NCBI GenBank assembly: GCA_965285935.1
Contig: OZ260665.1
Coordinates: 52,018,001 to 52,082,000, forward strand
Source: Ophelia neglecta
Taxonomy: Eukaryota
DNA length: 64,000 bases
Direction: 5' to 3'
The translations under genes and the position numbers were made by a program. Of the stretch, positions 23,701 to 35,600 are shown piece after piece (within the stretch, counting starts at the first letter, position 1; each line of letters begins with the position of its first letter). Under the pieces are notes generated by a model. The model did no database searches. It saw only the letters and a program-made list of their open reading frames with translations, and was not told the DNA's origin.

Positions 23701-26700
23701 ATCCCTTAAATTAGTCAGTCAGGTATCTTCTCCCGTTTTATCCACATCGAGTCTCCTTTGTCCGAATATTGAAGCTGATGGGCAAGTCTCACATCCTTTT
23801 ACTGTTAAAGTTATCACATTGATGTGTGTGTGAAGCTTTAAAACACTTGACCTGGATGCGCAGGTTCACGCATTTTTAACACCTGGGTATTATTACCCAG
23901 GCCAGAACTCAGATATGTTCTAATAACACGTCTACATTACTTACCATGTGTTTGGGCAAACTCGCAATATGAACCTTTTTATTTGAGATTGTTATCCCTA
24001 AACTTCTTAAGTTTAACGTCCACGAGTCTTTTTTAAAATATAGAGCGGATAATGAAGAAGCTTTGACACTAATATAGGCCGTGGACTCACTTTGTTGTAG
24101 GAGATACTGTCGAATGCCGCGTTGGCCTGGTCAGGATTGGTGATTGGCTGGATCATCGGGCGCGAGGTAGCACTGGAGTCGGTAACCATAGCTCCCTGAA
24201 ATGTGCTGCTCACAAACTGATTCAACTGAAATCGACATCAAGTAGCTAACATCAAATAGCTAAATTATGCCTAGATCTCGATTGGTCTAAAAACATGGTC
24301 ATTTTAGGCGTTTTTATGCACGAGTTGATTACTTAAGCGGGCCCGGCTTACTTCTATTCATAAAATTGATCCATTAATAAAAAAAATTAATTGTGACATT
24401 TATTTGAACCATTGAGAAATGAGACCATAGTGTTTTAAACAAAAAAAGAATGATTGCAGACAAACACACCATTTCGAAGTCAGATATCACCCCGTCTAGA
24501 GACGGCCTAGTCCAGTAGGTGGCAAATCCTTCATTCAACCAAATTTCGTCCCACCAGTAACACGTTAAAGGGTCCCCGAAATACTGATTTGTAAAATTTG
24601 CTTATGGTTTTTTATATTACCATTTCATCCATAGATTATATATAAGTTAATTTGAATCACACGACGTTTAAAATAATTTTAAAATACTCTATATTTTTCA
24701 AAACATATCCTACTGGAAGTTTGATATAATCAGCTATAATCAATCAAATAAATTTATATTGTGAATTAAGTTCACTCACATTGTGTGAGAGTTCATGCGC
24801 GAGGGTGCTGGACAGACTTTGCTTGTCACTCGTGCTGGCTTGGTTAGGGTCAAACAGCAGACTTCTCTCTCTGTATGTTATTATACCCCAATGCTCAGTG
24901 GCTCCAGATGGGTAGTCAGGAACAGCAACCTGGTCTAATAACAGAGATGAAATACACGCGATGAAATACACGCTTTATTAATGTCTACAAGAAGACAGAA
25001 TTATATACCATTGAAACTATTTGATTCAATGTGTTGAATGGTATGGAAGCCCATTGTATATTCAAATATATAAATTTTTGATTGTATTCGTTAAGACCTT
25101 TAAACTATTAATAGCTCAGGAAGATATATTTTAGATTTGTTTACCTAGTTTTGGTAGATGATATTCCATATCCATTTCGGACATTAACCAATCCATGAGT
25201 AAAGCCCCCGTACTCAAAGCGTAATCTACTTGGTCTATCAAATCCGGTCTGGCCCAAACACGATGCTTTAAAGGTATTACAGAAAGGGTATGAATTGATA
25301 CATAGTATTCACCCACATCAGGTAGCTCCAACTCTTGGTAGGCTACATAAATATAACATGTACAGTACTATTATATTACTAGTTAAATTATACTATTTGA
25401 CGACTCCAAGGGCGTGCAATCTTCACCAATGGTGTTCTTTCTTCGATAATGAATGATATAAAGCAAGGTTATCAGTAAATGAGTTAATTGTATTACATTG
25501 TAAAAGTTATTATTGTTGCGTGTATAAATGTATTGACTAAATGGAGTCTGAAGCTAAGATTAGCATATAGGCCTTGGATTTAGGATTAACAAGTTTGGAG
25601 TAGGCTTTATAGGAATAATAAAGCTTGTGTGTCAATATACTGAATAATCTTACGATAACTTAAAAGGTGTTTCACGATATTTTGGTGATCAGACCTACCG
25701 GTATTTCTCGAAACCTGCCTCCTCCAAAGGTGTTGTTTTTGTACAGGAAGTCGGTGACGATAAAACAGACGAGATAGCTACTCATTGGTACCGAGCGTTG
25801 GAAGGTGGTCTCTCGCCATGTTCCATCCGTGTCCAATGTGCTCTATGTTGATACGTACATGTACATATTACATTACTTAAAGTTAGGAAACGGCAAAGTC
25901 AAAAAGAAATGTGTGAGTTTATTTAATGGTTCTTACTTCAACCGGCATATTTGAGATTCCAGTGAAGTTCTGCCAGTGACGCAATGTGATGGTAAATTCG
26001 GCTTTAAACCGCGGCTCGTCAAAGTGTGGGAAAGCTTTGCGGGCTTCTGTTGGTTGGAACTTGGTTGTTGCGAGCCAGCTGTAAAAGGGGAAAATAATCA
26101 TAGAAAAAACATACTTAAATTTGCCAAAAAGCTTTGAAACATTTGAAAACGCCAATATGATTTAATATTCAAGTACAAGTACAACTCGAAAAACTCAATC
26201 AAAAGATGAAGACGATTAACCTGTTTATTCTTCTGTTGTAGCATTTATGTGCTATTAGTAAAATGAAAGCACAATGGTGTAGGTAGGTTGGGACTGTTTT
26301 TACTGTCGTAGGCCCGGGCCCACCAAAATAAGCGATAACTTGAATATACTTTTTTCATGACTGAAAATGTCTGCATTGGGCTAAGTGCATACCTTTCAAC
26401 TCCTGTTAGACTATTGACGTACGTGCTCTTATAATAGCCCACGATGCCGTTGACGAGAGACCCTGTGAATTCTAATGTTAAAAACACCCTTGTCCCTTGA
26501 GACATAGGGGACACCGTCTCAACTACCCAAAACTGATTTGGGTCGTATGCGAACGCCGTGACCACCGTTATATCCTGTCCTCCAGATGTCTTTACCTCGG
26601 TCTTAGTGATTGTCATCATTTTCTGATGCACTATCAAGTAGGTGGTATTATCTAGAATATCTATCTCCATGGTAACCCGGCCCTGGAAGGTATTGCCGTC

Positions 26701-32600: not shown

Positions 32601-35600
32601 AGCCGGGCAGCATTTATTTCGCTATAACAGAATCCCTGTCATTACTTCAATACAGGTGGTTTTTTAGATCTTTTGCATACGAAGGCTTTCGTAATAACTG
32701 TTATTATATATAGGTTAATATCTCACTCTTATTGCCAATTTAAATACATCAGCTCCCATAAAGTCTTCCATCATGGCCAACATGGAAGCACCCTACAATA
32801 GAAAAAGAAAACAGTTTAAGAGCTATATAGAAACTAGGCCTTATCTTATATCAGGCTGTAATATATATTATTGTGTCAATGTACCGCTTATCTCCTGTGT
32901 ACTATATATTTGTGATTATTGGTTATACCGCCATATCTCACCACATAACCCGTCGCCAAAAAAAAACAAACAAACACATAGACACACGGGAAGGGTGTGT
33001 ATGTGTGTGTCTGTGGGGGGGGGGGGGGGTGCAAGTTCAGAGTTTATGCGTCTGGCTCCATTTGTCTGCCTTTTAACATCATAACGATTGCATTTCTAAA
33101 CCGATTATTGTGAAACTTGGCACAATGATAGATGTTGGAAGACCTTAACTCCTTTTGATATTATTTTTCATGAACGCACACTTCTACATAAAATGTATAT
33201 TTGTCTATTAAACTCAAAGTAATACGTCATGTATATATTGATATTTAGTGTCCAGCTTCTCACATCTGTCTACCTTGTCGTAGGTGATGCCGTCGAAGGC
33301 TGCGTTCGCCTCATCAGGGTTGGTGATTTTGACGACGATTGGCCGGGAGCTGCTTCCTGCGTCTGATCTCATCACAGACTGCACGGTGTTGGCTACAAAC
33401 TGGCCAGCCTACAAATAATATCGTGCGGTTCCAGGCAGTGATAGTAAGTTTTTTTTATATTAACTGTAAGTGTTTTTGATGGTAGTTAAAACGATTATGT
33501 CCAAATAATAAATAAATTTAAAAATAATGAACCAAATGTATATTCGCAAAATAAACCCCCAAAAAAGAAGAGAAAAGCAAAGAAGGCCAAATTTATATGG
33601 TGGCCTATCCACATTAAGAAATTTAAGGTAACCTCCACCAATCAATGTACATGTACTAAATACATGGGCCTAGTATGCGATGTAGGCCTAGAGGCCTACA
33701 TGGCATACATTGGGTAGATGGCATAACCTTGATTAATATAGCACTGACGAGGAAAGTTTTAGCTACTTAAATGAATCAACTATTTTATGTACCATTATTT
33801 ACTTGAATAAACGCATTATTTAAAGACACGCGGTAACCACTAAGTAACCATCATATCTCCATCCATAACGGGTGCTCAGTTGTTAAACGAAATTTATTAC
33901 AATTTAACCGCATGCATTTGAGAACCATACCTGCTTACTAACAAATAGATGCCGCCATATCTTTGTGCAAGTTATACCTACGCAGTACATAATGCTAGAC
34001 TATTAAGTAAAAGCCCCTTATAATATATACAGTAGCATGGTAAAAATGTTCTTAACTACTAATTCGCCACAGTCATAATAGTGTCCCTTATTCCACTCAC
34101 TGAGAGAGACGTTTAAGCTATGGGGCCTTTTTCAGGAATTCAACATTTTCGCATTGTACATGTGCTTATTAAGAGCTTACTTAAATAACTTAACCAATCT
34201 GACCTTATCTAGCGCATACCATATTGAAATCAGTCTCCTTTGAATCGACACCCCTGTTCTCATAAAAACGCACCGTGCCTTCATTCAGCCAGATTTCATC
34301 CCAAAACAGGCAGGTAACAATATTACCGAAATACTGAAAATACGGTAAGTGGTGAAATGAGCAGAAGGGAGAAAAATGAGTAGGAGATATAGTAAGGTTC
34401 GTACTATGTTAAAGTCTTTTTCCGCCTCATCCATGGGTCTACCCTGGTAGAAGTTAACGCAACCTTCGTTCAGCCAAATTTCATCCCACCAAACACAGGT
34501 AACCGCGTTCCCAAAATACTGAAAATTGTGAGGAAGTAAACTAGTCAGATAACAACATCTGGAAAGCCATAATATTTATAAACCAGGTGGACAGTGCCTT
34601 GTTTATTAACATTGCTAAAGGGCATGTCCCTTTATAGACCAGTCAGGCAATGCCAGGCAACACCTCATCACGAGGAACCAAGAAATTACCTGTAGATATA
34701 GATAAAAAGTAGGTTATTAAAAATATGGTTTTAGAATTGAAAAGTGTAAAGTGTAGCTTAATCAACTACTTATTTTCGAACACGTTCAGCCATAAGGCAT
34801 TAGTATTGCATAATCCTTAAGTTAAACTTTAGTTTACATATTTAAAATAAAACAGAAGGAGGCTACTTGAAAAGCAAATGTTTAAATCATTTAGTGAATA
34901 AATCAGAAGATGGCATTACATTGTGCGCCAGTTCATGGGATACTATGGAGGCTACCCTTTGCTTGTCTCTGTCCCCAACCTGGGTGGGGTCGTAGAGGAG
35001 CCGTGCCTCTCGGTACGTGATCAGACCCCAGTGCTCAGTGGCTCCCGAAGGGTAATCTGGTACTGCCACTTGATCTGCAGGAAATTAAAAGGAGTCTGTA
35101 AGACCGGTATAGGAAACGACTTACTGACATACATAATGGATGAAATAGTTAACTCATTCATCTACATCAGTATATAGCAAACACTGTGACTGATGTCTGA
35201 ACATGTTTAACTAATTGTTATGTGTGAAGCATGTCCATTACTCACCTGATTTACGTGTGTGGGACAGAATAGAATGTTTACTATAAATGTTATTAACGAA
35301 AGAACACAACTATGCAGAGGGGGGGGGGGGGTATGTGGTATTTCCGACCCTCGGGATTGGCCTTTTTAACTGACTGTGATTCAGGAATAAAAGCCTTAAT
35401 TTTTCGTGCATTGCAGTTTGCCATTTATCCGTAATGTGCGATCAAGGAATTTCGTTTACTGTGACCTGGAAATGTTCTGTTTAATAAACGTGACTAGAGA
35501 ATCATTCTTTTCATTCATCGGGATGTAGGAAATAACTTCTTCCTTAATGTATATGAAATATCCAGATTGTAAATGTCCGTGATTCGGCATCTGCTATTTT

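Follow-up and report, generated by a model that had tools for sequence, protein, structure and literature searches.

Gene B, one of two tandem M1 aminopeptidase genes of Ophelia neglecta within the 64,000-nt stretch of contig OZ260665.1 analysed here (the window), contains two adjacent exons, 6a and 6b, that probably result from a tandem duplication and are used in an essentially mutually exclusive manner, generating two isoforms of the enzyme that differ at the S1′ subsite. Each gene B mRNA would take either 6a or 6b between exon 5 and exon 7. The products would be two membrane-anchored M1 aminopeptidases in which the zinc site is shared and the S1′ residues are swapped, with an altered preference for the residue that follows the scissile bond (P1′) as the expected consequence.

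Gene B is a multi-exon gene on the minus strand of the window (42752–29695), whose product is an M1 aminopeptidase anchored in the membrane at its N-terminus. The gene looks intact, since residues 2–943 of the 951-amino-acid ORF of L018 are colinear with it in a tblastn comparison. L018 is a 3.35-kb JGI metagenome contig of transcript type that has no introns, and its full ORF comprises an N-terminal anchor followed by the Peptidase_M1_N, Peptidase_M1 and ERAP1_C domains. The exons corresponding to residues 463–505 of this ORF are located in gene B at 32792–32727 and 32569–32504. Exons of gene B match the Pfam families PF17900 and PF01433, and the domain order M1_N–M1–ERAP1_C is supported by the colinearity with the three-domain L018 protein.

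Exon 5 of gene B (35074–34920, minus strand; PF01433 positions 28–78) carries GATEH and, at its end, HELAH, and so contributes two zinc ligands and the catalytic glutamate. It ends in phase 0 with HELAHN, after which the donor sequence is gtaatg. Intron 5 (34919–34519, minus strand) is 401 nt long. On the other side of the pair an intron of 811 nt (34219–33409, minus strand) separates exon 6b from exon 7 (33408–33274, minus strand; PF01433 positions 119–161), which is preceded by tttgtag and contains the conserved ITYDK motif with the catalytic tyrosine. The 811-nt intron also contains a near-perfect palindrome (33673–33708), whose 17-nt arms show 94% complementarity and lie 2 nt apart; it possibly belongs to a repeat element.

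Gene A, the tandem paralogue, lies 10 kb downstream of gene B, also on the minus strand (about 26850–17764). Its exon 5 (window positions 24780–24938) encodes GATEH and HELAHN-YFGN, and it has a single exon 6 (24583–24470, minus strand). In both genes GATEH occupies the position of the GXMEN exopeptidase motif, with the glycine and the glutamate retained, methionine replaced by threonine and asparagine by histidine, and both have HELAHN-YFGN where M1 enzymes have HELAHQWFGN. Metagenome relatives have either GAMEH or GATEH. The subfamily is distinguished from canonical M1 enzymes by GA[T/M]EH in place of GAMEN and by HELAHN-[Y/F]FGN in place of HELAHQWFGN, and it seems to be without a name.

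Exon 6a (34518–34405, minus strand) and exon 6b (34333–34220, minus strand) are both 114 nt in length. Each is preceded by ttttcag, and they are followed by gtacga and gtatgc respectively. Reading of the minus-strand sequence bears out the description in the earlier note of two tandem exons that are phase 0-0, free of stop codons and provided with AG and GT splice sites, and the translations agree exactly with the two peptides given there. The intron between them (34404–34334, minus strand) is 71 nt long, and no shorter one was seen in gene A or gene B. The zinc-ligand glutamate is residue 18 of either exon. The same translations confirm that the spacing from HEXXH is exact whichever exon is used: 18 residues separate HELAH from the glutamate of WLNEG. 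The two peptides share 25 of their 38 residues (66% identity), and both match positions 80–114 of the Pfam family Peptidase_M1 (PF01433). A profile built from 6a and 6b aligns to residues 324–361 of glutamyl aminopeptidase (APA; 4kx7), and also to chains of APN, ERAP1/2 and IRAP.

A six-frame search of the entire 762-Mb assembly locates 12 such exons, and gene B is the only place where they form a tandem pair. The nine other M1 paralogues of the genome have the canonical GAMEN and WFGN motifs with one exon copy apiece. The single copy claimed for gene A stands, no relic of a second being found there by short-word blastn; the same method found no third copy in gene B. An assembly artefact, considered unlikely in the earlier note, is rejected as the source of the pair because the two copies differ at 39% of their bases.

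There are 45 differences between exons 6a and 6b over 114 nucleotides, of which 10, 9 and 26 fall on the first, second and third codon positions. Synonymous sites are saturated (pS ~1) while pN is 0.25, from which it follows that both copies are old and have been under selection. When 45 substitutions were placed at random positions in 200,000 simulation runs, no run retained more than 19 shared residues, compared with the 25 observed (P < 5e-6), and only 19% of the simulated sequences were free of stop codons. The segment WDEIWLNEG is the same in the two exons despite three synonymous changes within it, and the first 19 codons contain seven synonymous differences. These seven differences rule out recent gene conversion as the source of the identical zinc-ligand motif, which has thus been kept by selection. 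The sequence comparison therefore supports the claim that 6a and 6b are both real coding exons under long-term purifying selection, as the earlier note had proposed from the identity of this segment.

The same data bear on the possibility that splicing only ever uses one of the pair, the other being an unused relic of the duplication. The donors gtacga and gtatgc both depart from a strong consensus, and several relatives get by with one copy, as such a relic would allow. However, despite synonymous saturation the frame, the length, both splice sites, 25 of 38 residues and the zinc-ligand motif have all been kept; this level of conservation was never reproduced by random substitution, and the copies found in other taxa are separately conserved, with pN/pS of 0.1–0.2. 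After so long a time an unused relic would no longer combine an intact frame, length, splice sites and motif. We regard the relic explanation as unlikely, and both exons as probably in use.

The earlier note had called for a search for both exons in related species, together with an estimate of selection. When 1.84 billion representative proteins were searched with a profile, many short ORFs that are single exons of eukaryotic metagenome contigs were returned. From the contigs of those ORFs, together with one metagenome scan, four further tandem pairs from other organisms were obtained, each copy of which is under purifying selection. In L013 the copies lie at 871–984 and 1045–1158, with exons of 114 nt and a spacer of 60 nt. 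L015, a TARA contig, has 114-nt copies at 510–623 and 663–776 separated by only 39 nt, with exon 7 following the pair at 1080. The copies of L057 (271–384 and 438–551) are again of 114 nt, with a spacer of 53 nt. Those of L061 (2469–2594 and 2649–2774) are of 126 nt with a spacer of 54 nt, and are flanked on the same contig by exon 5 and exon 7 equivalents that are 80 and 73% identical, respectively, to those of gene B. AG and GT sites are present at all of these exons except for the second copy of L013, where no GT is found at the expected donor, 31 nt from the end of the contig.

The L013 and L015 pairs are orthologous copy by copy, with 30 of 38 and 31 of 38 residues in common (pS 0.76 and 0.79, pN 0.14 and 0.10). 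The pair must therefore be older than the split between these two, and each copy has since been under purifying selection, with pN/pS of about 0.13–0.18. Within the L057 pair pS is 1.03 and pN 0.17; the corresponding values for L061 are 0.74 and 0.09. In L013 (845–870) and L015 (484–509) the ~25 nt that precede the first exon copy are nearly identical, while the remainder of the intron cannot be aligned and synonymous sites are near saturation. On this comparison the short element may be a conserved splicing control element.

The tandem pair is not universal among the relatives, as judged from their contigs. A single copy is present in L016, L020 and L021, where exon 7 is in view, and probably in L017, L019, L058 and L059. 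The Logan contig L059 has no intron between its counterparts of exons 4 and 5, which are fused into one (815–1093), and over 680 nt on the upstream side and 226 nt on the downstream side it shows a single exon 6; taken together, the fusion and the single exon 6 indicate that gene structure varies within the subfamily. A maximum-likelihood tree of 18 exon copies has almost no resolved branching, and for this reason is compatible with either a single or a repeated origin of the duplication, and with the window pair being or not being orthologous to the other pairs.

Two further proteins contain duplications in this region. P0017 (147 amino acids, from another organism) is an ORF that runs through a recent partial tandem duplication of this exon and the end of the upstream intron; its first copy reads WLNVG, with loss of the glutamate ligand. 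Its sequence suggests a duplication of this kind caught early, or one that failed. P0001 (547 amino acids) contains a single HEXXH, after which a segment of 106 residues, extending from WFGN to beyond the catalytic tyrosine, is present in three nearly identical copies. Either this gene model strings the alternative exon groups of an array into one protein, or it is an assembly artefact.

The residues that differ between 6a and 6b can be placed in the active site by comparison with M1 enzymes of known structure. In crystal or docked complexes of LTA4H, ligands are contacted by W311, D312 and F314 as well as by E318, itself a ligand of the zinc (PMC6207623, PMC10279647). At the corresponding exon positions, 11, 12, 14 and 18, 6a and 6b carry the same residues. 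Whenever the motif is present, the S1′ cavity of an M1 enzyme includes the residues located 4 and 7 positions after the glutamate ligand (PMC7225938, Table 2). These are Ser415 and Glu418 in APN, Ser420 and Glu423 in APA (with Phe424 at +8), Val322 and Glu325 in LTA4H, Thr491 and Glu494 in IRAP, and Lys397 and Glu400 in ERAP2 (PMC7225938, Table 2). Positions +4, +7 and +8 are exon positions 22, 25 and 26, and all three differ between 6a and 6b (Asn/Arg, Gln/Glu and Gly/Asn, respectively). The loop that follows the S1′ positions is also different.

Position +4 differs between the copies in all five tandem pairs. Arginine is found there in exactly one copy of each, with Asn, Ile, Ile, Asn and Ser in the non-Arg copies; it is also present in six of ten single-copy relatives. 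The APN, APA, LTA4H, IRAP and ERAP2 paralogues similarly vary at +4, with Ser, Val, Thr or Lys compared with the Asn and Arg of 6a and 6b, but there the diversity derives from separate genes, and in gene B it would derive from the choice of exon if use is exclusive.

The earlier note had assigned to this segment both the third zinc ligand and residues around the S1 pocket. The ligand and its spacing are as claimed, but the pocket is not, as the variable residues map to S1′ (PMC7225938). The aminoacyl-AMC panel that was proposed as an assay would consequently probe the wrong subsite, because such substrates report on S1 only. By analogy with the homologous pocket positions of other M1 enzymes, the 6a and 6b isoforms are likely to differ in P1′ preference.

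The exons of alpha-tropomyosin numbered 2 and 3 are the classic case of mutual exclusion by an intervening intron that is too short. Known mechanisms of mutually exclusive splicing include, besides this, incompatibility of U2 and U12 splice sites, nonsense-mediated decay and competing RNA structures (PMC6071210). Nonsense-mediated decay cannot police double inclusion or double skipping in gene B, since 114 nt is a multiple of 3 and the frame is kept (PMC6071210). The splice sites around 6a and 6b are all GT-AG. The inverted repeats that link intron 5, the spacer and the intron after 6b are short and rich in A and T, with 74–85% complementarity; the best duplex energies are not above those of dinucleotide shuffles, so that competing intronic RNA structures are rejected as evidence.

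Avoidance of joint inclusion would most probably be due to the short spacer, in which the donor and the branch point are probably too close together, leading to steric interference. The spacers of the five loci are 39, 53, 54, 60 and 71 nt, compared with 254–811 nt for the flanking introns, and none of about 45 further introns examined in the M1 genes of the genome is shorter than 94 nt. Steric interference has been defined by a donor-to-branch distance below 50 bp (Hatje et al., PMC5740500). The best branch-point candidate in the 71-nt spacer, chosen by eye, is CTCAT with its adenine at 34358, 47 nt from the donor; an alternative, also by eye, is CTTAC, 12 nt from the acceptor and 59 nt from the donor. 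In the relatives, spacers of 39, 53, 54 and 60 nt place any normally positioned branch point within 50 nt of the donor. In spacer length (39–71 nt over the five loci) and in having exactly two exons the pairs resemble clusters governed by steric interference (PMC6071210, PMC5740500). The predicted donor-to-branch distance of the relatives is likewise of this kind, and that of gene B may be, if the candidate at 47 nt is the one used. Regulated choice between the exons may be superimposed on the steric interference.

A 71-nt intron may nevertheless be spliceable in an annelid, and if it were removed efficiently 6a and 6b could routinely be included together, so that the protein would carry an internal duplication of 38 residues after the HEXXH helix. 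Double inclusion keeps the frame, and translation of both exons in one protein would also predict selection on both. Against this, both exons retain a full zinc-ligand motif and match the same Pfam positions, yet only one can fit 18 residues past HEXXH. The L018 ORF holds exactly one 38-residue module (residues 380–417) between the equivalents of exon 5 and exon 7. In L015 joint inclusion is implausible, as the spacer has only 39 nt and introduces an in-frame stop codon when retained. Among the best 150 of the 366 hits in the 1.84 billion proteins, none has two modules 38 residues apart; the matches there with several stretches are tandem whole M1 units or larger, near-identical repeats. Routine co-inclusion is thus very improbable. 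A search for spliced homologues with the stop-free frame around 6a gave no candidates, and one with residues 366–430 of the L018 ORF found M1 proteins that are all distant, among them no pair of isoforms; the word index is apparently insensitive for regions as short as these, and the two negative results carry little weight.

A less strict arrangement has also to be weighed, in which 6a and 6b are alternative exons subject to regulated choice (for example by tissue), and some transcripts with both exons or neither are tolerated, or their proteins degraded. An exon length that is a multiple of 3 provides no control through the reading frame, a spacer of 71 nt is close to the limit for steric interference, and reads joining mutually exclusive exons have been found in a minority of human clusters (Hatje et al., PMC5740500). 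But skipping both exons would remove the third zinc ligand and including both would duplicate it, and given the HEXXH-X18-E arrangement of M1 enzymes a functional enzyme is unlikely in either case. We consider this arrangement rather unlikely, and prefer the reading in which the two exons are essentially mutually exclusive.

Animal genes often contain exons duplicated in tandem (PMC9013439). Mutually exclusive exons are predicted where adjacent internal exons are homologous, similar in length and alike in splice sites and reading frame (Pillmann et al., PMC3228551). Exons 6a and 6b have every one of these sequence features, both copies are also under selection, and pairs are present in other species (L013, L015, L057 and L061). 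On the Drosophila X chromosome only 0.56% of exons outside mutually exclusive clusters share these features, and such pairs are almost never constitutive (PMC3228551). Like the clusters that arose by tandem duplication, such as that of the arthropod myosin heavy chain, the pair consists of adjacent homologous exons of equal length and phase (PMC3228551, PMC9013439, PMC5740500). As in known clusters, the exons encode a single embedded structural element and both copies are conserved. The pair differs from them in the element concerned, which comprises the zinc-ligand helix and the S1′ wall and belongs to an M1 metallopeptidase, and in that exclusivity is here predicted from sequence.

The type of splicing is ordinary, and its occurrence in the M1 family is without a report that we could find: the literature searched yielded no papers on mutually exclusive exons at the catalytic centre of M1 or other aminopeptidases. 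The specific interest of the pair lies in the contrast of Arg with non-Arg at S1′ and in its recurrence in several taxa. More tentatively, we suggest that this subfamily of membrane M1 aminopeptidases in marine invertebrates may have gained, in one ancient event or repeatedly, an S1′ wall that can be selected by splicing. The alternative exons would then carry Arg and non-Arg residues at +4 and confer different P1′ specificities, with a short spacer that cannot be spliced enforcing the choice. As a whole this extended proposal is possible rather than probable.

For annotation the pair is a warning, as gene predictors will drop one of 6a and 6b or include both. Pocket diversity among M1 enzymes is normally achieved through paralogous genes (APN, APA, ERAP1/2, IRAP and LTA4H); if exclusive use is true, it is achieved here through the exon choice of a single gene. 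The two isoforms would then constitute a natural minimal pair for the manner in which S1′ residues set P1′ preference in gluzincins, and the active site of a metallopeptidase would join the structures that are tuned by mutually exclusive splicing.
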